From: Tetramitus jugosus
Taxonomy: Eukaryota > Protista > Heterolobosea
NCBI GenBank assembly: GCA_937625935.1
Contig: OW569389.1
Coordinates: 1-64,000 of the forward strand
DNA: 64,000 bases
Direction: 5' to 3'
Positions 1 to 25,161 of the stretch are shown piece after piece. Under the pieces are notes generated by a model. That model saw only the letters and a program-made list of their open reading frames with translations. It searched no databases and was not told where the DNA came from. The translations under genes were made by a program, and so were the position numbers. Position 1 is the stretch's first letter, and every line of letters begins with the position of its first letter.

Positions 1-771
1 CCAAACCCAAACCCAAACCCAAACCCAAACCCAAACCCAACCCAAACCCAACCCCAACCCAAACCCCCAAACCCAAACCCAAACCCAAACCCAAACCCAA
101 ACCCAAACCCAAACCCAAACCCAAACCCAAACCCAAACCCAAACCCAAACCCAAACCCAAACCCAACCCAAACCCAAACCCAAACCCAAACCCAAACCCA
201 AACCCAAACCCAAACCCAAACCCAAACCCAAACCCAAACCCAAACCCAAACCCAAACCCAAACCCAAACCCAAACCCAAACCCAAACCCAAACCCAAACC
301 CAAACCCAAACCCAAACCCAAACCCAAACCCAAACCCAAACCCAAACCCAAACCCAAACCCAAACCCAAACCCAAACCCAAACCCAAACCCAAACCCAAA
401 CCCAAACCCAAACCCAAACCCAAACCCAAACCCAAACCCAAACCCAAACCCAAACCCAAACCCAAACCCAAACCCAAACCCAAACCCAAACCCAAACCCA
501 AACCCAAACCCAAACCCAAACCCAAACCCAAACCCAAACCCAAACCCAAACCCAAACCCAAACCCAAACCCAAACCCAAACCCAAACCCAAACCCAAACC
601 CAAACCCAAACCCAAACCCAAACCCAAACCCAAACCCAAACCCAAACCCAAACCCAAACCCAAACCCAAACCCAAACCCAAACCCAAACCCAAACCCAAA
701 CCCAAACCCAAACCCAAACCCAAACCCAAACCCAAACCCAAACCCAAACCCAAACCCAAACCCAAACCCAA
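1..771. repeat. Telomere, (CCCAAA)n / G-strand (TTTGGG)n, left chromosome end
   Basis: About 128 near-perfect CCCAAA units start at base 1, with the C-rich strand 5' as expected at a left end. A few variants (CCCAA, CCCCAA, CCCCCAAA) occur only distally (~36-71, ~162-166). Confidence 0.97.
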
Positions 772-12060: not shown

Positions 12061-12573
12061 CTTGTCTGTTTGTTTGTGCGTTATTACTGCGAACAAATTG
12101 CTGGCGCCAATAACAAGAGCGCGGACAAAATGAAAAACCGAGTGCCACTACAATGGCACGCAACTCCCACCACTGCCTTCCGCAATGGACGATACTGTTC
12201 ATTCGGAAGACTTTCTTCTAAATGAATTGGCTCAATCGTTTAACCTCAGGAAGCGAGTTTTTTTTTTTCTCTTGGAAGCTAGTCAAAATTTATTACCCAC
12301 AGGAATATTGATACAGTTATTCCTAAAATCTTAAAGGCATTACGTGATACAGAGTGACCATCACCTGGATATTCGAAGAAGTGCGAAGCAAATCTATTCA
12401 AGAAGTGATGCTTTGATCCAGAAAACAATTTAGTAAAGATTGGGTATTTCATACACTTGTATGCAGTTGTTTGTACTCCTACAAGAAGGCTCAAGTCAAT
12501 AACTGTAATCGTCAACATCAATTTTTTTCCTAAAACGGCCATCCCAAAACTAATTTTATTTTTCGAGTACGGG

Positions 12574-15500
12574 TTATTGAGAACTTTGTTCTGTTCTTGT
12601 AACCAACATCACAAGTTTCCTGATAGTCGAATTTCTAATCAATTGTTCAATTGTAATTCTTTTCCCAAACACTTTTTGGATAGTTTCGACAAATATTGGA
12701 TAAGTGAGCGAAGTGGCACCCAAATTGATAAAACTTTCGTCGATTGAAATCTTTTCAATATGAAGAATTGAAGTCCAAACATCACACATTTTCTTGTGGT
12801 CTGGTGTTTCTGGTGCCACGTATTCACCCAACAAATTTGATTTGTCAAATCTTTGATTTGGCATTGGTAGTTTGTTTACATCCACCTTTCCATTCAATGT
12901 TTCTGGAAACTTTTCCATGTGAATTATGAAACTTGGCATCATCCAGGATGGTAATGTTGATTCAATATGTGACCTCACATTTTGTTCTTCATCTGACATA
13001 TAGTATGCAATTAAATACTGTTGATCCAAAATCGTTCTGGTCATCACAACCGCCCTTTTCACACATGGGTGACTTTCGATGGTGCCTATTAATTCATTGA
13101 CTTCGATTCTGTGTCCACGAATTTTTACTTGAAAATCTGTTCTGCCCAAAAATTCGAACTCTCCATCAAAATTCAATTTCACTAAATCGCCTGTTCGATA
13201 CAATCTTCCATCAAGTGTATTCACAAATCTTTGTTTGGTTAATTCATTTTTCATCCAATATCCATCTGCAACACCAATTCCACCAATAAACAGTTCCCCA
13301 ACAGAACCACGTGGAACTAAATTCAAGGTTTCATCCATTACATAACAAACAGTATTTGAAATTGGTTTTCCAATGGTAATCGAATCACAACTTTCAATTT
13401 TCTTGCACAATGACCATATAGTTGTTTCTGATGGTCCATAAACATTGTAGACTTTTGATGTTATCATTAATAATTTTTCGCAAATCTTTGACGTCAATAC
13501 TTCACCACCAACAAGAATAGTCATGTCATTGTTGGGTTGAATATGTGTTCCAATCAAAGAAAATAAAGTGGGTGTTGCTTGCAGAACTGTTGGTTTTTCT
13601 GCATTGATCCAATCAACCAAGTCAACAGGGTTGGAGGCAACACATACTGGACAAACCATTAATTGACATCCAATTATCAGTGGCATAAAAACTTCAAGCG
13701 CCATAATGTCAAACGAAATACTTGTGAGATTCCACACTTTGTCACTCTTCCTCAAATTCAGTCTCTTAGAAAAATATTGGATGACATTCATAATCGAGTT
13801 GTGTCTGATGATACATGCCTTTGGAGCTCCAGTTGATCCAGATGTGTAAATAATGTATGCAATGTTATTGGGTGTCGAATGTTCGATATTTTCTCGCAAT
13901 GTTTTTTCAAGAAGAATATCATCGAGCACCAATATGTTTTGTGCATTTTCCAGTTTAAGAGATGATTTTCTTGTTGCAATTACCAGTACTGGGCATGAGT
14001 CTTCTATCATATAATTCAAACGGTTGATTGGATATGTTGGATCCATTGGTATGTAGCAAGCACCAACCTTGAGGATTGCCAGCATTACCACAATCATATC
14101 ACAACTTCTGTTCATGCATATTCCAACGCTATCACCACATTTTACACCAAATTGATTCATGATGATATGTGCTAGATGATTGGACATATTGTTTAACTCG
14201 AAATAAGTCAATGTTGCGTCCATATAACGTCCATCAGGTGTTGAATATCTAATAACGGCAAAATTTGGTGTTTCTTTTGCCCTTCGATCAATTTCTGCTG
14301 TGATTGACAAGGTTTCTGGCCCATTCAAAATTTCGCCATGTCCAATTTTTTTGATGCAACTCAATTCGTCTTTTGACAATGTTGAAATTTCACTCACTGG
14401 GGTGCAACGATTTAGTTTGTCCAAAAGTTGTTCCAGAATGTGCCCATAGTTCCGCAACATGGAATTAACGAACTTGTCAGAGTAGATACAAGAATGTTCA
14501 ACATCAATCAACAAGCTTCCGTTGTCCAAGTACACATTCCAGCACATAGGGAACATATTTGAATCATGGTGAATATCAATTCTTTCGACTTTCGTGTCTT
14601 TTAAAACCAGTTTAGAATCGCTCTCCATGTTTTGCATCACAAACATCAATGTTGCAGGGTGCATTTCTGAAAACTGCTTGCAAATTGAAAGAATGTCTCT
14701 AAACCCAATTCGTGTATGATCCATTGACTTATGAATGTTTGTGGTGACCAGTTCAATCAAATCACTCAATGTCATTTTAGGATTGATTTTGTTTCTGGCA
14801 ATCATTGGTAAAACTAGCAGTCCAACAGTATTCGATACATATGATTCACCTCTCAGTGCCACTTCGGTGCCAATAGAAATGTCACATTGTCCAGTGTATT
14901 TCAACAACATTAAATTCAAAGAACTTAATAGGACTGCATATGGCGTACAATGAAATAGTGCACAATAAGTTTGCAATTTAGTGCCTATGTTAAATGTCTT
15001 CTTTGTTCTCATACCACCATTCTGTTCCTTGTCACCTTTTAATACCAGTGGTACAAAACCATTCAAATAATTGTTCCAGTACTCAACATCTCTGTAACTG
15101 ATTGAGTTGTCCAAAACAAAATTGCGATAACTGGCAAAATCATTTTTGTTGCCAACAGAAATTTCAGTGCAATATAGATTCGAAATTTTTTCAATAAGGA
15201 GTCTCTCTGAGAATGAATCAATCACGATTCCATGTTTGACAATGATGAGTACATGATGTTTTTCATCCATGCTGTTCCTCAATATTTCAACTCTGACCAG
15301 TGGACCATCACTCAAACAAAATGGATACTGAATAATTTTTGTTGCCTCACTCAACATGAAATCTGGATCAACAATTTTTGGCTCCAACTTGAAACTGAAT
15401 TCGTGTTTTGGTGATTGTTGTAGTATTCCATCGTTCATTTCAATAACACACCTGAGAGCAAAGTGTTGATTAAAAACTGTACTCAATGTTGATTCAAGTG

Positions 15501-17337
15501 CACTCACATCCAATGTCCCCTTGATTGAAAATATTAATGGCAAGTTGTATAAAGGACTTTGAGGGTTCAGCTGTTGGTGATTCCAGACTTCTATTTGGGT
15601 GGATGTCAAGGGCAACGGTTCTAATGTTTCATTACTACTCAAATGTTTTGGGTTACATTCAGGTTTGATGTACTCTACAAATTCTGATACAACTGGATGA
15701 CGTAAAATATCAGAGACCGAAATATTGTATCCTGATTGTGACAGTAACGACGAAACCATTTGGGCAACCATTGAATGGCCACCCAACTCCAAAAAATTGG
15801 CATCACGACCAAGTCCATCCATCTGAAACACTTGTTCAAAAATCTCGACAACAATTTTTTCTAGAGGTGTTTTAGGAGGTTCGTATGAAGTGTTTTTGAT
15901 GCTTGGTGGTTCCAACTTCATTCTGTCTACCTTTCCATGTGCATTCATTGGGAGATGTGTCATACTGACATAATGACTTGGCACTACTGCTGGATGAAGA
16001 TGCTCCTGGAGATGCAAACGAATTTGTTGGCCTCGGTTCTTTCCATTTGAGCAATAATACACAACCAAATATTTTTGATTGTTGGCAGAATTTGTGAAAC
16101 ATCTAACTGCACACTGGCTGATGTTCGAAATCTTGCCCACCAAACTTTCAATTTCTTCAATTTCGATTCTCACTCCTCTAATTTTCACTTGGTTGTCCAC
16201 TCTCCCAATAAATTCCAAGTTTCCATCACAATTCATTCTTACCAAGTCTCCCGTTTTGTATAGTCTACCATACTTTGTCTCAACAAATTTTTGATTGGTA
16301 TAATCGGTCATGCCAAAGTAACCACGTGCAACACCCAATCCACCAATAAACAATTCACCCTCAGAGCATGTATTCATGGATTCGTCGAATATGTACAAAT
16401 CATAACCATCAAATGGTTTTCCAATAACCGATGGATCATCTCCATTCTTAAAAAAATGAAGAGTTGCACCAATTGTAGTTTCTGTTGGACCATATCCGTT
16501 TACCACAGTTCGATTTCCATCACACCAGAACTCCATATTTTTTGAATCAGCCATGTCTCCCATCACAACCAACATTGATAATGAAGGTAAATCCTCTTTG
16601 GGCATCAAAGACAGAAATGCAGGTGTCACACTTACCATGGTAATGTTGTTGTTCTTGATGCATTTATGGATGTCACCAGGTGACAAACAAATTTCATCAT
16701 CTGCAATGTACAAAGTGGCCCCATTGAAGATGGATAGATATATGTCCCAACCAGCTGCATCAAAACCCATGGAAATATAACTCAAAAGTCGCGAATTGGA
16801 GGTCACATGACACAATCTACTGGCACTTTTGATGAAATTTATGATTGAGTGTTGTTCGATCATAACACCTTTGGGTTTTCCCGATGACCCTGATGTGTAA
16901 ATAATGTACGCCAGGGTTGATGAATCATTTGGTTGAACAGATATTTTGGGTGCAGACTCATTCACCATAACGATGGATTTCTGTGCCAGTTTGTCCAAAA
17001 AAATTGCTGGTACAAAATCATCAATTATCATCAATGCTGGATTTACGTCAAGTAAAATATGTGTTAACCTTTCTATGGGATATGATGGATCAAATGGCAC
17101 ATAACATCCTCCAATTTTCATAATTGCCATCATCACTGAAATTAGTTTCCACCCTCTGCTCAAACAAAATCCAATCGGTGTCTCTTGGATTGGTGTTTCC
17201 ATCTTGTCGAGAATCAATGAACACATCCTTTCCGTGTGGTCATAAAGTTGCTGGTATGTTATATGTTCACCCTTGGAAACAATTGCAATCTTGTCAGGGT
17301 GTTGTTTGCATACGGAAGAAAAAAGGCTGTGTATCAT
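12574..17337 (-). CDS. Two-module non-ribosomal peptide synthetase, A-T-C-A-T, intronless, no TE/R domain
   Basis: Two full A-domain motif sets (YTSGSSGKPKG/YTSGSTGAPKA, YGPTE/YGPSE, YKTGDL/YRTGDL, GRxDxQVKIRG, GKVD), two carrier motifs (LGGHS, LGATS) and a C domain (LTSTQ..W, YNLP, HFALR, HGIVIDS). Confidence 0.97.
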   Translation of the reverse strand: MIHSLFSSVCKQHPDKIAIVSKGEHITYQQLYDHTERMCSLILDKMETPIQETPIGFCLSRGWKLISVMMAIMKIGGCYVPFDPSYPIERLTHILLDVNPALMIIDDFVPAIFLDKLAQKSIVMVNESAPKISVQPNDSSTLAYIIYTSGSSGKPKGVMIEQHSIINFIKSASRLCHVTSNSRLLSYISMGFDAAGWDIYLSIFNGATLYIADDEICLSPGDIHKCIKNNNITMVSVTPAFLSLMPKEDLPSLSMLVVMGDMADSKNMEFWCDGNRTVVNGYGPTETTIGATLHFFKNGDDPSVIGKPFDGYDLYIFDESMNTCSEGELFIGGLGVARGYFGMTDYTNQKFVETKYGRLYKTGDLVRMNCDGNLEFIGRVDNQVKIRGVRIEIEEIESLVGKISNISQCAVRCFTNSANNQKYLVVYYCSNGKNRGQQIRLHLQEHLHPAVVPSHYVSMTHLPMNAHGKVDRMKLEPPSIKNTSYEPPKTPLEKIVVEIFEQVFQMDGLGRDANFLELGGHSMVAQMVSSLLSQSGYNISVSDILRHPVVSEFVEYIKPECNPKHLSSNETLEPLPLTSTQIEVWNHQQLNPQSPLYNLPLIFSIKGTLDVSALESTLSTVFNQHFALRCVIEMNDGILQQSPKHEFSFKLEPKIVDPDFMLSEATKIIQYPFCLSDGPLVRVEILRNSMDEKHHVLIIVKHGIVIDSFSERLLIEKISNLYCTEISVGNKNDFASYRNFVLDNSISYRDVEYWNNYLNGFVPLVLKGDKEQNGGMRTKKTFNIGTKLQTYCALFHCTPYAVLLSSLNLMLLKYTGQCDISIGTEVALRGESYVSNTVGLLVLPMIARNKINPKMTLSDLIELVTTNIHKSMDHTRIGFRDILSICKQFSEMHPATLMFVMQNMESDSKLVLKDTKVERIDIHHDSNMFPMCWNVYLDNGSLLIDVEHSCIYSDKFVNSMLRNYGHILEQLLDKLNRCTPVSEISTLSKDELSCIKKIGHGEILNGPETLSITAEIDRRAKETPNFAVIRYSTPDGRYMDATLTYFELNNMSNHLAHIIMNQFGVKCGDSVGICMNRSCDMIVVMLAILKVGACYIPMDPTYPINRLNYMIEDSCPVLVIATRKSSLKLENAQNILVLDDILLEKTLRENIEHSTPNNIAYIIYTSGSTGAPKACIIRHNSIMNVIQYFSKRLNLRKSDKVWNLTSISFDIMALEVFMPLIIGCQLMVCPVCVASNPVDLVDWINAEKPTVLQATPTLFSLIGTHIQPNNDMTILVGGEVLTSKICEKLLMITSKVYNVYGPSETTIWSLCKKIESCDSITIGKPISNTVCYVMDETLNLVPRGSVGELFIGGIGVADGYWMKNELTKQRFVNTLDGRLYRTGDLVKLNFDGEFEFLGRTDFQVKIRGHRIEVNELIGTIESHPCVKRAVVMTRTILDQQYLIAYYMSDEEQNVRSHIESTLPSWMMPSFIIHMEKFPETLNGKVDVNKLPMPNQRFDKSNLLGEYVAPETPDHKKMCDVWTSILHIEKISIDESFINLGATSLTYPIFVETIQKVFGKRITIEQLIRNSTIRKLVMLVTRTEQSSQ

Positions 17338-18534
17338 TTTGATGTCGAATATTTTTGGGTGCGTTTCATTTAGTTGGCCTTTTTATGCTTCCAACATAGT
17401 TACTTTACAATTTTCTCTATTCAATGAAGTCAATGAAGCTCCAACTTACCGAGCAAGGTCACTTTTTGTTTTGTCCCACAAAAAATACTCCTCCTCAAAC
17501 AACCACTCCAACTACATACTGGTACCCTATTACTCAACACTATTGGTGTCTATAACTGCTCGCAGATTTGTGTTTATCAACTCCAGAGTCTCAGTGTATT
17601 TCACAACTTCGTTTGTACCACACCTGTTCCTCAAATCAACCAACAACAGATACAAATAAGATGATGAAGATCAGTATTATTATCAATACTACTATGGCAA
17701 AAGCAATAATAATACCTTGAAAAAAAAATAAACCACAACTGGAATAAGCTCATTGAATCTGTTTTACATCTGCTCTCTAGAAATGATAGCTACAGAAATA
17801 TCTTCCTCGCCTCGACGTGCGTATCGGCACCTTGAAATGTGAACTCTAAACTTGCCAGGCTGATGTCGGCCGTTTCGATCGGGATATCGAGGCACCAATA
17901 GAGGCAACTTATATTCTAATTCACTCTGTTTCCTTTTTTCAATTACGATCGTTCTAATGAAAAAGTGAGTGGGGATATACCCAATAACAATTGCAATGAT
18001 GATCAATGGAATCATAACAGAAAAGATAATAATAACTTCTTTCCGAATAGGATTTCTCTGATCTGATACTACATCCTTCGGCAGGCAAGATGGAGCATAA
18101 AATTCGTGAAAAGAATGCTTATGTTGTCTCTCCACAATGAGGTAATATGAGTATTGATGAACAGAGAAAGCTATAATTTTTCGAATGCTGATTTAATTTT
18201 CCTCTGTGCTCGCTCAAAACTCGCTGTCACTCAAGGTGTTAGATATCGATCGTCAACGTTTAGACATTATTGCGTCTCTTTGCTTCATGCCGTCAATCTG
18301 GAAGACCTTACGATACGGTGTGAGATTCCAGATTTTGGCCTATTCCAACATTTAACTCAATTCGTTCATTGAAGTTCTTGAAGATTGGAACTGTTAGAGA
18401 CGAAATTGATCAATCCAACTTCGTCTTCGAGATTGATTGTTGAACTAGCTCATTCGAACACGACACTTGACTCTTGTAGTTCAAAAAGTGCACACAAAAC
18501 AACAACACAACAGTCATCAAACAACAACAAGCAA

Positions 18535-19545: not shown

Positions 19546-21570
19546 TTATTTCTTATCTTCTCGATTCTGGAGCTCCAGGATATCAATTTTTACCATACCC
19601 TCTTCTCCTTCATCATCCGAGCCGTCTGATGATTCTCCATCAGATGACTCTTGTGTGTTGGTGGTTGTGGATGGTCCACCTGGTAACAACATTTGCTTAG
19701 AAGCCAGTTTGCGATAATATCCATCTGGCATGTTCACTAACTCCAGATGAGTTCCCATCTCCTTGATCTCTCCCTTGTTCATCACAACAATCACATCTGA
19801 GTCAATAACCGTTGACAGACGATGAGCAATGATGATAGACGTCCTTCCCTCCATCAACTTGTTCAACGCTTCTTGCACAATGGATTCTGACTGTGTGTCC
19901 AATGCACTTGTTGCTTCATCAAGCAACAACAACTTTGGATCTTGAATCATTGCTCTTGCAATTGCAATTCTTTGCTTTTGACCACCAGACATTGAAACAC
20001 CTCTCTCTCCTAGCATAGTGTTATATCCATCAGGAAGTGACATGATAAAGTCATGTGCATTGGCTGCAATTGCTGCATCAATCACATCTTGTTCGGTCAC
20101 TTGCCTTCCAGATTGTTGCACGGCATACAATATATTATCTCTGATGGAAGAGGCAAACAGTGTTGGTTCCTGTGTCACAATTCCAATATTTCTGTGCAAC
20201 CACCGAGGATCAATTTCGTTCAAGTCATTGCCATCCAAGATAATTTGTCCAGAATCTGCTTGATAAAACTTCTCTAGCAGACCAACTATCGTCGATTTAC
20301 CTGAACCTGAAGCACCGACCAAGGCAACAGCTTGACCAGGATGAATGGTAAGGTTAAAGTTCTTCAAAACTTGAGTGTTTGGTCTTGTTGGATACGAGAA
20401 GGTGACATTCTTGAACTCAATGTGGCCCACTACTTTCTCTGGTTGAAGACCGCCACTAGGGTTCATCAGTGGATGTCTTCTGATCACCTTCAATAGATCT
20501 CTGATATTCTGGGAAGCTTTACCAAACTCGGGAAGAATCTTAAGACCATTCGCAATACCAATAGTACTCATCAGAATGTAACCGTACACTTGAAACATAA
20601 TACCAAGAGTTATCTCGCCCTTGACCACAAGTGTACCTCCAAACCAGAAACCAAGCGCAATATTACCATAATTGAAGAAAATGGCAAATGGAACTGTACC
20701 AGCAATCACAGCTGCTTTAAACAAGTAGACCTTGTGAATCTCCAACAACTTGTGGAAGAATCTCTTCTTTTCTCTCTCCTCTCCATCCATTGATCGAATG
20801 GTTCTCATGGCACTCACGACTTCATTGGAAATGTTGGCTGCTTGTCCGTTGATGCGATTAATCAATTTCTGAGCAATAGTGACTCCAACACCAGTAAACG
20901 CTAGAATGAGAACGAATAGAGGTATAATGGCCATCATCACGAGAGCCATCTTCCATCCAGCAACCAGGGCCATAATAAATCCGAACACAATTTGAGCACC
21001 GTGCGTGGCAAGTTCTCCGAGCTTGTTCGTGTATGTTTCTTGAATCAACTCCATTGCTTCTGTCATATCATTGATCAATTGACCAGTTCTCTTCATATCA
21101 AAGTATCCAATCTCTTGATCCATCAGTGAGTCAAAGTATGCCGTCTTGAGACGAGTTCCAACTCTTCCATGAGCAAAATTCATACAGAAGAAATGAATGA
21201 CTTGAGCAACAAAGGCACCCACTGCAACATAGGCCATCTTTGTAGCTAAATCACTCATGACAACACTCTGCTTTGTCACCGCCTTTAGACTCGTTGCTTG
21301 GGTCACAATCATTGACGTAGAAACACCAGTGGATGTCGACATGCTATCAATCATATCACCCAACAGCATGAACAACAGAATGGGTATACAACCAAAGCCC
21401 GCAGCTCCAAACATTCCAATTAATAGTAGAATATTCTCTGGTCCAAAGTACCACCAGACCATGATAGGACTGACAAACTTTGGATCGGCTGGATCTTCAA
21501 AATCCGCCATCTTGTGTGGTTTACTCTTCTTGAAAGCCTTTACACTCTTTTCTCTCTTATGTCGGGCCAT
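19546..21570 (-). CDS. ABCB (MDR/P-glycoprotein-type) half transporter, TMD-NBD
   Basis: 6-TM domain, Walker A GASGSGKST, Q-loop TQEP, signature MSGGQKQR, Walker B LLLLDE, H-loop IAH. Confidence 0.96.
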   Translation of the reverse strand: MARHKREKSVKAFKKSKPHKMADFEDPADPKFVSPIMVWWYFGPENILLLIGMFGAAGFGCIPILLFMLLGDMIDSMSTSTGVSTSMIVTQATSLKAVTKQSVVMSDLATKMAYVAVGAFVAQVIHFFCMNFAHGRVGTRLKTAYFDSLMDQEIGYFDMKRTGQLINDMTEAMELIQETYTNKLGELATHGAQIVFGFIMALVAGWKMALVMMAIIPLFVLILAFTGVGVTIAQKLINRINGQAANISNEVVSAMRTIRSMDGEEREKKRFFHKLLEIHKVYLFKAAVIAGTVPFAIFFNYGNIALGFWFGGTLVVKGEITLGIMFQVYGYILMSTIGIANGLKILPEFGKASQNIRDLLKVIRRHPLMNPSGGLQPEKVVGHIEFKNVTFSYPTRPNTQVLKNFNLTIHPGQAVALVGASGSGKSTIVGLLEKFYQADSGQIILDGNDLNEIDPRWLHRNIGIVTQEPTLFASSIRDNILYAVQQSGRQVTEQDVIDAAIAANAHDFIMSLPDGYNTMLGERGVSMSGGQKQRIAIARAMIQDPKLLLLDEATSALDTQSESIVQEALNKLMEGRTSIIIAHRLSTVIDSDVIVVMNKGEIKEMGTHLELVNMPDGYYRKLASKQMLLPGGPSTTTNTQESSDGESSDGSDDEGEEGMVKIDILELQNREDKK

Positions 21571-22069
21571 AGTTATGTGTTTATATACAAGGTAGCAATA
21601 GGTATGCTTATTAAGTGTTGGTCTTGTTTGTTTTGTATTGGTTTGTTATTGGCTGCTCAAGGACATAATCATCGCGCACCTTTTTAGTTCAAAATTTCCA
21701 AGGCGCGCCACCCGCATAACCTCCGGTAAAGTGCGAGCGTATCGCATTGGCGTTTCATGGAGAAAATCCAGGGGAATACTTTTCAAATTGGAAAGTACCT
21801 TCTAAGCATGGATTCTCACGCAACCAAAGTACATGTAAGGTTCATCAAACTTCCATGTCTCTCGCTTGATGGCATTGATCGGCACAAGTATTTTTTCATT
21901 GAACCAAAAAAGTCGGAGCAACGAACGGTTGAACTTCAGAATTGTCGTTGAAGTCTTCGCACCTCCGACAGTATTATTCCAATTGTCCAACGCTCAAATT
22001 GGTTGTCGATCTGGGACCATGGTCTCTCTCGCCCAACAACAGAACTGAACTAACCACCAACGCCAACTA

Positions 22070-24097
22070 ATGCAGCAACACTTTGAGTCACTGATGCATG
22101 CCATTGCTCCTCTCCATTCGGCTGCTTCTGCCTCCCCCAACACCACTCTCACCTTCCACCATGACTCACCAACAACAACAACAACATCCACTCCTTCTCC
22201 ACAACTGACTCAACCACCACAACAAAACTCCAATCTTCCACCTTCATCATCATCACAACAACAAGAACAACAACAACAACCACCACACTATCGAATCGCA
22301 TGTCAACCATGTCGTTCCGCTCACACAAAATGCGACAAAATTCTTCCCTGTTGTTCACAATGTCTCAAAAGTGGAAAAACTTGCGAATATGCACCACCAA
22401 AAAAACGTCGACCCAGAAGACGAACAAACACAGTAGCCACAGCAGTCGCAACCAACGAACTCAATGATGATGATAACCATAAGAAAAAAAAGAAGATGAA
22501 AATCGATCATCACACCTCTCATCACAACAACAATAATGATATGAGCAGTAGTAGTAGTAGTCATAGTCATGATAGTGATGGAGATGAAGATGGAGAAGAA
22601 GACGAAGAAGGAGACGAAGGAGATGATGATGATAGAGTTCCAATCGAACCAGAAGTACCATTCAGAACATCTGATTTAGTCAATTTTTATTATAGAGAGT
22701 GTAATGCACATTGGAATTTAGTGCCACAGAATTTGGTGAGTGAAGCTGTTCTTGCAGCAGAGAGTAAACAGACTCATCACAACATTGATCACAATAATAA
22801 TAACCAAAATCATCATCAGGCGACTAGTAGTAGTAGTAGTAATAGTAGTAATAGTGGTAATAGTGGTAGTAATAATAGTAGTAGTAGTGGTAATAGTGAA
22901 CATTATCAATTTGATTTGCATGTGAATAAGGCTGTTTGGTGCAGTGTACAAATGATGTCACTCAGTAGAATTTTAGCAGTGGAACGACATGAAGAAGAAT
23001 TGGAGAATCGGTTGCGAAACATTATTCGACAATTGAATCGAATGTGTCAGACATTGTTGTTGCGTGTAGATTTGTTTAAAGCGATACCCTATAATGAAAA
23101 ATTGGCTTGGGCAGCCATGAACATGTCCATTTATGAACGAGTGTATCATTTTGATAATAGAGGAGGGTATGAACAGTGGATGGGACTGGTGAAATCCTAT
23201 TTGAAATCAGCTCGATCACCCTCGGCACAATTAAAGGCATGTTATGGAACGTTCAAGTGGAGATCAGAGTGCAAACTAGCGGATCCAAATGATTTGAGAG
23301 GATATAAAATGATTGCAAAATCATTAAAGAAGAGAATTCGGTTGAATCGAATGTTGTTAAAGAGCAAGTTGTGGATTGATAACTCGGTCAAGAATCGCCT
23401 GTTGGAAGATTTGATTAATGTGATCAAGCAGAGAATTACAAGAGATGATCAATCTGTAGACTTGGCAGCACTGTCTACCATGTTAGACTTGTTGCAACAG
23501 ATTATTAATGATGTTCCTCAGAGCGCGACAGCAACGTTAGATTTACTCAGTTGCAAAATAGATTGTATATTGAATGAGGAGTCTAGAGTGGTTCAAAGTA
23601 CACCGAATGAGACGTTGAATCATCTCTATGCGTTCAAGAGAGAAGTCAGTGATCAAATATCACTGTTTCTCGCAAGTTTTCCAAAATTACCAATCGATAC
23701 TCTATGGAACGTAAGGCAAGTGTGCGTTGCTGTATCTGTTCACTTTCAATGCGCACTGCGGGGAGAGTCCGTGCTAGACATTCTTCGCATAGATGCTCGT
23801 ATATTAGAATTGTTGGATATTTCGCGGCGATTGCCAGAGAAGGGCATAACTCTGTTAAGGGAGGTCAATCAATGGATTGCATCAGTCGATCAATCACGTC
23901 AATCGATATCAAATATGAACACACAACACGCTGACCAACAATACTTGGGACTCAATACAAATGTCTCCTCTTTTGTAGATCTAGATCTGAACATGGAGGA
24001 TTTACTGCTCGATGACGCGACTGTTTTACAAATTCTTGCTGATTTGGCTCCAGCTAATTCAACCCAAGATTTCAATTTTACGAATTTATTTGATTGA
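22070..24097 (+). CDS. Zn(II)2Cys6 (GAL4-type) transcription factor
   Basis: ACQPCRSAHTKCDKILPCCSQCLKSGKTCEY (Cx2Cx6Cx6Cx2Cx6C), NLS KKRRPRRR, low-complexity tracts and an acidic/hydrophobic C-terminus. Confidence 0.93.
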   Translation: MQQHFESLMHAIAPLHSAASASPNTTLTFHHDSPTTTTTSTPSPQLTQPPQQNSNLPPSSSSQQQEQQQQPPHYRIACQPCRSAHTKCDKILPCCSQCLKSGKTCEYAPPKKRRPRRRTNTVATAVATNELNDDDNHKKKKKMKIDHHTSHHNNNNDMSSSSSSHSHDSDGDEDGEEDEEGDEGDDDDRVPIEPEVPFRTSDLVNFYYRECNAHWNLVPQNLVSEAVLAAESKQTHHNIDHNNNNQNHHQATSSSSSNSSNSGNSGSNNSSSSGNSEHYQFDLHVNKAVWCSVQMMSLSRILAVERHEEELENRLRNIIRQLNRMCQTLLLRVDLFKAIPYNEKLAWAAMNMSIYERVYHFDNRGGYEQWMGLVKSYLKSARSPSAQLKACYGTFKWRSECKLADPNDLRGYKMIAKSLKKRIRLNRMLLKSKLWIDNSVKNRLLEDLINVIKQRITRDDQSVDLAALSTMLDLLQQIINDVPQSATATLDLLSCKIDCILNEESRVVQSTPNETLNHLYAFKREVSDQISLFLASFPKLPIDTLWNVRQVCVAVSVHFQCALRGESVLDILRIDARILELLDISRRLPEKGITLLREVNQWIASVDQSRQSISNMNTQHADQQYLGLNTNVSSFVDLDLNMEDLLLDDATVLQILADLAPANSTQDFNFTNLFD

Positions 24098-24243
24098 AGT
24101 CACGCGAGGGTAACCTATTTATTGAGATGGAATAAAAGATAAGTCTTTCTCTGATTCGACGCATAGCTGGTGATGAATTGAGAACAACATTTGCACAAGA
24201 AATGACAATACTAGTTAGTTTACAAACGAGATTCTTTTATAGT

Positions 24244-25161
24244 TTACAATTGTTTGCACTGACCAGTGGTTTCACCCAAGATGAGCGGGAACTCAGCACC
24301 TTCCAAATAAGCATTGAAATGCTTCTTGAAGTAGGTCCAGGAAGACTCGTTTGGAACATTCAAATAGCATGGTGGAGCATGCTTGTAACCTGGGTTTCTG
24401 TTCAATTCAGCTCTCAAAACAGCAGGCAATTCATCAATGCTCTTAATCTTGGCAGCTTCAGCAGCTTGGATCAAGTATCCACGAGTTGCACCCATCTTCA
24501 TGAATGGCAAGAATGGAGAAACTCTGTTCCAAGCCATAGTGTATTCATCAACTTGCTTCTTGCTCTTCTTTCTCAAACCCTTGGTCTCAGTGAAGAACTT
24601 GAAATATTCAGCAGCCTTGTACATTCTGTCAGGGCTATATGGTACATAGGAAGCATTTCCGAATAGAGTGTTTGGATAGAAGAGATTCACAGTGGAAGAA
24701 AATTCAGTGATGCTGTCAGTCAAGCTGCTTGCAGGCATTGGATAACTTGCAGCGTACAATGGGAATTGTACTGGATCATTGGCAACGTGAACCACGGTGA
24801 CATTCTCATTGGTGAATGGATTCAACCAAGTGGTCAACTTTTTCTTGGTGACTGGGTCAAGGTACAATTGCATTTCACGCTGAGTAGTAACATAGTTGTC
24901 ACCCATCTTGATACATCTTGCAATATTGACACCGACGATGTCAAAGATTGGAGCAAATGGAGCACCGTCAATGCTGGCAGTCAAAGTTCCGTTCCAAGCG
25001 GTAATGACCTCGTCAGTGGACTTCAGAGAGCATCTCAATCTTACTTGTTCCTCAAGAGAGACTTGAGCGGCATGGAAAGGGGAGCTCTTCTTGCAAAGGA
25101 CAAGAGTCGCCACACTTGCCAGGATCAAAATGGTGAGCACGAAAAAGTTTGTATGGTACAT
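24244..25161 (-). CDS. Secreted DUF1838-family protein
   Basis: Signal peptide, then WNG..., REMQLYLDPVT...WLNPFTNENVTVVHVANDPV, LFYPN, AAEYF, WNRVSPFLPFMKMG and PNESSWTYFKKH. Confidence 0.8.
   Translation of the reverse strand: MYHTNFFVLTILILASVATLVLCKKSSPFHAAQVSLEEQVRLRCSLKSTDEVITAWNGTLTASIDGAPFAPIFDIVGVNIARCIKMGDNYVTTQREMQLYLDPVTKKKLTTWLNPFTNENVTVVHVANDPVQFPLYAASYPMPASSLTDSITEFSSTVNLFYPNTLFGNASYVPYSPDRMYKAAEYFKFFTETKGLRKKSKKQVDEYTMAWNRVSPFLPFMKMGATRGYLIQAAEAAKIKSIDELPAVLRAELNRNPGYKHAPPCYLNVPNESSWTYFKKHFNAYLEGAEFPLILGETTGQCKQL

Follow-up and report, generated by a model that had tools for sequence, protein, structure and literature searches.

The closest described counterparts of the gene reported here are the uncharacterised proteins annotated as 'NcpA' or non-ribosomal peptide synthetase in Tupanvirus (1589 and 1593 amino acids) and their homologue in Yasminevirus (1619 amino acids), which share with it an A-T-C-A-T order of adenylation (A), carrier (T) and condensation (C) domains. 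The gene encodes a dimodular nonribosomal peptide synthetase (NRPS) of the heterolobosean amoeba Tetramitus jugosus and lies at positions 12574-17337, on the minus strand, of the 64,000 nucleotides that open contig OW569389.1 of assembly GCA_937625935.1 (hereafter the window). The Tupanvirus and Yasminevirus proteins are 37-40% identical to the amoeba NRPS over 99% of the protein, are similar in length and end, as it does, after the second carrier domain (T2). They have the same specificity code, DILQLGVIWK, in the second adenylation domain (A2), the code DAWTVMGIGK against DAWSVMGIGK of the amoeba in the first (A1), and the same active-site motif (C3) devoid of its second His in the condensation domain. 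Genes of the Tupanvirus type reside in viral genomes, have a GC content at third codon positions (GC3) of 0.14-0.22 (0.49 in Yasminevirus) and usually stand beside a cytochrome P450 gene, unlike the amoeba copy, which is chromosomal and subtelomeric, resembles the host in composition and lacks a partner P450. To our knowledge, no NRPS product is known from Heterolobosea or from any giant virus. On balance we think it probable that the amoeba chromosome carries a functional, expressed and horizontally acquired dimodular NRPS, belonging to a bacterial-derived family found otherwise in giant viruses (Mimiviridae: Tupanvirus, Yasminevirus and klosneuvirus-like contigs). What is new is an amoebal member of a giant-virus-borne NRPS family with a C domain lacking the second His, a predicted glycine module and no release domain. 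In the giant-virus literature searched, the sole mention of NRPS is of 'NRPS-like' hits that one survey obtained with antiSMASH (10.1101/2025.09.26.678796), and a review of giant-virus metabolism is silent on them.

A second comparable group is a bacterial clade linked to AurF-like oxygenases (metagenome proteins P0043 and P0096 and the high-GC contigs L026, L028 and L029), which forms the sister clade in the trees discussed below. Like the family, it has a KHN(M/I)I-x-DA-x-SE C3 motif and a DAWTIMG-type A1 code. The glycine code of A2 is present in P0043 and P0096, A2 lying beyond the available sequence of the high-GC contigs, and no release domain is seen in these two proteins, as in the amoeba NRPS. 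The clade differs in an N-terminal extension of ~290-335 amino acids without a Pfam match and in its placement in an operon with the AurF-like oxygenase and transporters. AusA-type synthetases (A-T-C-A-T-R, where R is a reductase domain) are dimodular like the amoeba NRPS, and their product is dipeptide-derived and cyclises. The AusA type is also the best whole-protein NCBIfam model for the amoeba NRPS, but the score of 807 bits falls far short of the 2500-bit cut-off and the alignment spans model positions 415-1995 of 2373 (A1 to T2), stopping before the R domain. The amoeba NRPS differs from this type in having no terminal reductase, a different C3 motif and different specificities.

The NRPS is encoded by a single uninterrupted open reading frame (ORF) of 1587 amino acids that begins with ATG and contains no premature stop (the coordinates include the stop codon). 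Pfam assigns to it two AMP-binding and two PP-binding domains, Condensation and AMP-binding_C, in the order A-T-C-A-T. All on the minus strand, A1 spans residues 1-480 (15898..17337), the first carrier domain (T1) residues 496-557 (15667..15852), the condensation domain residues 575-991 (14365..15615; Pfam Condensation, E = 6e-51), A2 residues 1017-1484 (12886..14289) and T2, the second PP-binding stretch, residues ~1512-1580 (12598..12804). The condensation domain is of the LCL-like kind by sequence; its active-site motif is altered and we refer to it as C*. Both A domains match Pfam AMP-binding with E = 2e-139 and TIGR01733 with 708 bits against a cut-off of 317 bits, and their core motifs (A3 TSGxTGxPK, A5 NxYGPTE, A7 YxTGD, A8 GRxDxQVKIRGxRIE and the A10 Lys) are all intact and invariant in the family alignment. 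Also intact and invariant in the family are the carrier serines, Ser522 in the LGGHS motif of T1 and Ser1543 in the LGATS motif of T2, together with Gly1540 of the latter. As the protein ends 44 residues past Ser1543, there is no room for a thioesterase (TE), R or terminal C domain. Pfam detects no such release domain in the NRPS, and no member of the family has one, so that the absence of a release domain noted in the initial annotation extends to the family as a whole.

The ten Stachelhaus positions were read from the anchor motifs FDxxxW/L, TP, GGE/MGD and NxYGP(T/S)E in an alignment of 23 sequences (the NRPS and 22 relatives), and the codes first read by eye, DAWSVMGIGK for A1 and DILQLGVIWK for A2, were recovered without change. 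Since literature searches for specificity codes gave nothing useful (nor did those for His-less C3 motifs), the canonical glycine code was re-derived from PDB alignments: the A2 pocket segment alone was searched against the PDB and the codes were read from the printed alignments. The closest pockets are those of AB3403 (PDB identifier 4ZXH; DILQLGVVWK) and DhbF (PDB identifier 5U89; DILQLGLIWK), each one residue off A2. The A domains of both are reported by the depositors to activate glycine. A2 is predicted to load glycine, a property that extends over the family, and the earlier prediction of an X-Gly product holds. In DhbF and AB3403 (PDB identifiers 4ZXH and 4ZXI) the A2-like pocket is found, however, within C-A-T-(C/TE) modules of siderophore-type or undefined bacterial pathways. 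LgrA module 2 was also considered as a comparison for A2 and dropped, as the alignment gave an unrelated glycine pocket. For the A1 pocket, the best PDB matches are 8G97 followed by the Phe domains of TycA and GrsA. The DAW-type code of A1 probably denotes a large hydrophobic or aromatic L-amino acid, and the Gly residues at positions 322 and 331 suggest a roomy hydrophobic pocket.

The search for homologues covered 5.8 billion protein clusters. The single closest relative is a partial protein, P0001, with 96% identity. The next relatives, of 1483-1677 amino acids, align over 98-100% of their length with 36-40% identity and include the proteins of Tupanvirus deep ocean, Tupanvirus soda lake and Yasminevirus, whereas ordinary bacterial hits are longer and 27-31% identical. 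Nearly all family members share both codes, A1 being mostly DAWTVMGIGK, and every full-length member ends after T2; the amoeba gene is therefore not a 3'-truncated copy of a longer NRPS, a possibility that had been raised at the outset. The contexts of the remaining viral-like members, made up of AT-rich, densely packed intronless genes (ankyrin, F-box, RNA_pol_N, YqaJ and thymidylate kinase), look like giant-virus contigs. An exhaustive representative search with the C-A2-T2 region returned only mega-synthetases of 5,000-8,000 amino acids with summed scores, besides P0001, and a scan of genome contigs with P0096 gave no relative. Scans of IMG/VR with the family alignment and with the back-translated KHNII-x-DA-x-SE motif found no member in that collection, which may hold few giant viruses, so that this is no proof of absence.

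Trees inferred with FastTree and IQ-TREE recover the A-T-C-A-T family as monophyletic with 100% support, apart from ordinary bacterial NRPS, and both give, at 99-100% support, the topology (bacterial clade,(amoeba pair,(18 viral-like))). The protein falls within bacterial-type NRPS diversity, and a lateral origin is supported. Acquisition by a bacterial or giant-virus route had been proposed earlier, and the only close full-length relatives are indeed those from giant viruses, which match the amoeba protein in length and architecture. With this topology the tree alone does not fix the direction of transfer, and we lean slightly towards a transfer from virus to amoeba. A realistic if lesser possibility is an older cellular acquisition from bacteria, in the amoeba lineage or another protist, that giant viruses captured later, or else separate acquisitions by amoeba and viruses from closely related unsampled bacteria. 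Several observations speak for such a reverse or independent transfer and against descent from a virus: the amoeba pair, on a long branch (0.66), is sister to the 18-member viral clade (100% support) and not nested in it; codon composition hardly departs from that of the host; the partner P450 in viruses is of a eukaryotic type; and the contig, with its telomere and host-type genes, has no recognisable viral insertion and no virus-like neighbour, tblastx of the window flanks against the viral and bacterial neighbour genes revealing no similarity. On the other hand, the only eukaryotic copies found belong to this species complex and form one 96% cluster, as against very divergent viral lineages; the gene stands alone in a subtelomere, and its flanks vary from strain to strain; and its GC3 of 0.345 lies near the lower, AT-rich limit of the host values in the window (0.335-0.49; most viral copies have 0.14-0.22). 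Contact between virus and amoeba is plausible, as the heterolobosean Naegleria is host to a klosneuvirus (PMC11043551).

The assembly comprises 26.35 Mb in 56 contigs, and the published genome of T. jugosus CCAP 1588/3C has 26.3 Mb and 52 chromosomes (PMC11106597). CCCAAA repeats fill the start of the window (1-770, ~770 bp), placing the NRPS ~12 kb from a telomere, in agreement with the subtelomeric position given before. Just inside the telomere, at 1257-1478, there are several near-palindromic motifs of ~24 nt (ggcggaacc-agctgg-ttcc type), ~40-60 bp apart. The flanks had been described as pseudogene debris on both sides. This may apply to the small flanking ORFs, which have no Pfam match, but not to an intact 674-amino-acid ABCB half-transporter 2.2 kb upstream. 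The latter, encoded on the NRPS strand, lies at 19546-25161 together with genes for a Zn2Cys6 protein (675 amino acids) and a DUF1838 protein (304 amino acids), and it is only by adjacency that these genes suggest a gene cluster with the NRPS.

Homology to a sibling contig, L009, stops 20 nt upstream of the ATG, and the 254 nt upstream on L009 itself are absent from this genome. At this breakpoint, just upstream of the start codon (17359..17392), lies a 34-bp fragment, with two mismatches, of a 625-bp high-copy tandem repeat, which is present as long arrays of either orientation on contigs C53 and C55, has one copy on C11 and reaches a metagenome DNA depth of ~5,000. The fragment resembles filler sequence left where a rearrangement was joined. 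A search of the NRPS and its surroundings for target-site duplications and terminal repeats revealed only the internal similarity of A1 and A2. Read data bear on whether the locus is chimeric, a concern of the initial annotation, in two ways: a 4.4-kb DNA contig from a groundwater metagenome runs from inside the NRPS to 166 bp past the start codon with the same upstream flank, confirming the 5' junction, whereas the 3' junction is not bridged in that independent DNA run, a point against our reading, and several alternative sequences abut at ~12434-12551. A weak joint in the same metagenome, from 12600 to 17428 (with 29 nt on one side), skips the whole NRPS and could be a gene-less allele or noise. 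Along with the alternative 3' sequences, it suggests that strains in the environment differ in their flanks or in whether they carry the gene. One might suspect, from the bacterial-style intronless gene and the unbridged 3' junction with its several alternatives, that a contig of a giant virus or a bacterium was misjoined to an amoeba chromosome end, but we give this almost no credence: the 5' junction is confirmed independently, DNA depth in the groundwater metagenome is similar for NRPS and flanks, GC3 is host-like and not virus-like, and the stretch recurs in environmental data, including oligo-dT coverage that fits a polyadenylated mRNA.

These data amount to 20 public runs from 13 studies that contain the NRPS stretch. 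RNA coverage comes from three libraries, each from a different study. Contigs from two soil metatranscriptomes cover 12626-17228 and 12584-17187, and an oligo-dT library covers 12540-16093 at 79x with a 3' bias, coverage declining toward the 5' end. The gene, for which absence of transcription had been a worry, is thus represented in RNA. The flanks 12197-12583 and 17393-17659 are empty in all three libraries, save for the 3' untranslated stretch from 12540 in the oligo-dT library, while the groundwater DNA metagenome does cover them. Contigs of the RNA libraries run colinear to the genome sequence without splice joints, which bears out the description of the gene as intronless. The locus probably gives rise to a discrete, unspliced, polyadenylated transcript, although these contigs show neither the strand of the transcript nor its exact ends.

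The NRPS is under purifying selection. Identity to L009 is 97.0% over 4401 nt, free of gaps and stops, at a synonymous divergence (dS) of 0.071 and a ratio of nonsynonymous to synonymous divergence (dN/dS) of 0.28, with values of 0.22, 0.28 and 0.27 for A1, C* and A2, respectively. A subtelomeric gene amid ORFs without recognisable domains, lacking its partner oxygenase and perhaps facing a gene-less allele, could conceivably be a recently acquired, functionless relic whose frame is still open and which decays like its surroundings. We hold this to be very improbable given a frame of 4.76 kb that is free of stops in two lineages at this divergence and selective constraint, RNA-library contigs from several soils that cover the gene, and catalytic A and T motifs that are all intact. 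The NRPS is not truncated, silent or a contaminant.

C* departs from ordinary C domains in its active-site motif, a feature that the initial annotation does not mention. Its best PDB match is the C domain of TycC (PDB identifier 2JGP), in which the HHSISDG of MHHSISDG aligns column for column with H702-G703-I-V-I-D707-S708 of the NRPS (15214..15234, minus strand). The second His of the catalytic motif is replaced by Gly (G703) and the HHxxxDG pattern is thereby absent. This His is missing in 23/23 family members, while HH is present in 84/85 ordinary bacterial hits. Among the 23 members the motif begins with HN in 13, HG in three, HD in two, HA and HQ in one each, and DG in three. It continues with D-A/S instead of D-G and then a conserved x-S-E, giving the pattern K-H-N/G-I-I-x-D-A/S-x-S-E, in which D707 and S710 are invariant. 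Since all members share the loss and the dN/dS of the C domain is like that of the A domains, the loss of the second His is a synapomorphy of the family and not decay in the amoeba. Three proteins of a viral-like subclade (P0052, P0063 and P0104) have K-D-G in place of K-H-N and have lost both C3 histidines. At least one member of this subclade (on L030) still has a P450 neighbour.

With the second His missing throughout and both gone in three viral members, canonical condensation is not assured, and this counts against a working dipeptide synthetase. According to a recent review (PMC11546977), the role of the second His is debated, and its mutation does not always abolish activity. Two domains with a C-type fold in which it is replaced behave differently: the C domain of streptothricin ORF18, with HQxxxDM, is active, whereas the glycopeptide X domain, with HRxxxDD, only recruits P450s (PMC11546977). 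C* may accordingly form no peptide bond and serve as a scaffold or recruitment domain in the manner of the X domain, the two A-T units offering amino acids, each loaded on its own, to enzymes that act in trans. Such a role would fit the absence of the second His across the family and of both in three members, the conserved neighbouring oxygenase (P450 or AurF), the P450 link recalling the X domain, and the X-domain precedent itself (PMC11546977). We nevertheless think it unlikely. By sequence C* is nearest to ordinary LCL C domains and not to X domains, and X-domain structures do not occur among its PDB sequence matches at E <= 1e-10. It differs from the X domain in motif and occupies the canonical place between T1 and A2, whereas the inactive X domain follows the last T. 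Its dN/dS equals that of the A domains, and the amoeba keeps it without any partner P450. The active HQxxxDM domain also argues for catalysis (PMC11546977), though ORF18 uses a soluble amine acceptor.

A partner oxygenase is a recurrent feature of the wider family. Upstream of the NRPS and divergent from it, a P450 gene is found in four of the five viral contexts in which the upstream region is visible (Tupanvirus deep ocean, L010, L012 and L030, with P450s at L015:6380-7882, L010:8493-9848, L012:8447-9856 and L030:6439-7818), Yasminevirus being the exception. Comparison of the Tupanvirus P450 with those of L010 and L012 shows the three to be orthologous to one another, with 49-50% identity, and that of Tupanvirus resembles eukaryotic microsomal or mitochondrial types in its PDB matches. 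The giant-virus literature searched makes no mention of a two-gene P450-NRPS module. Members of the bacterial sister clade instead have the gene of an AurF-like diiron oxygenase directly upstream of the NRPS (L020 and L028). The operon-like cluster of that clade (L020:601-13211; L028:1-5689) is made up of genes for an MFS transporter, two unannotated proteins of ~565 amino acids, the AurF-like oxygenase, the NRPS with its N-terminal extension of ~335 amino acids and a LysE exporter, and the pair of AurF and NRPS genes is seen again on high-GC contigs. The unannotated operon proteins and the N-terminal extension received no assignment from searches of NCBIfam, Pfam and the PDB. In the amoeba, tblastn and tblastx found no remnant of a P450 or of viral neighbours beside the NRPS.

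A candidate enzyme for priming the carrier domains is present in the host. An Sfp/AASDHPPT-type phosphopantetheinyl transferase (PPTase), whose presence in the genome had been suggested as a check, is encoded by a 391-amino-acid ORF on contig C18 with AASDHPPT_N and ACPS domains, and an AcpS-type PPTase ORF is found on C47. We propose that the Sfp-type PPTase would prime T1 and T2, that A1 would charge T1 with a probably large, hydrophobic or aromatic L-amino acid and A2 would charge T2 with glycine, and that C* would condense the two into X-Gly-S-T2 although Asn or Gly stands in for its second His. As TE, R and terminal C domains are absent from the whole family, release may occur by intramolecular aminolysis to cyclo(X-Gly) or through a trans-acting hydrolase or acceptor. 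The P450 of the viruses, or the AurF-like oxygenase of the bacterial sister clade, presumably tailors the substrate or the product, and the amoeba copy would have lost its oxygenase partner or never have had one. Some observations sit poorly with this scheme: we infer diketopiperazine release, and no release partner was found for the amoeba NRPS; the A1 code matches none that we can name; and the amoeba genome has no orthologue of the viral P450, containing only generic P450s, the best with 30% identity over 180 amino acids.

Other carrier-protein enzymes are also encoded in the genome. A C-A-T-ketosynthase (KS) hybrid synthase lies at C36:417002-420046, and A-T-R genes resembling carboxylate reductases are located at C20:511259, C49:69593 and C45:60032. 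These four are only 27-33% identical to the NRPS of the window and hence represent separate acquisitions or families; their presence indicates that carrier-protein chemistry is not alien to the amoeba.

Taken to its furthest, a functional amoebal NRPS of viral kinship could mean that giant viruses spread a small pathway, consisting of a synthetase with a His-less C domain that makes an X-Gly diketopiperazine and releases it by itself and a tailoring oxygenase (a P450 in viruses, an AurF-like enzyme in the bacterial ancestors), and that a soil amoeba domesticated only the synthetase, which it expresses in its natural habitat. The conserved residues D707, S710 and E711 would then constitute a new C-domain route to condensation, or to condensation and cyclorelease. 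We regard this extension as distinctly doubtful. Products that are N-oxidised, bind metals or act as signals can be envisaged, with pulcherriminic and aspergillic acid as analogues. The single intronless 4.8-kb gene, with RNA coverage and a predicted glycine module, offers a tractable entry point to the product of the viral family. In lacking the 'catalytic' His throughout while under purifying selection, the family provides a natural experiment on how C domains work, a matter of long debate, and the distribution of the family over bacteria, viruses and an amoeba documents the traffic of secondary-metabolite genes across the interface between giant viruses and amoebae.

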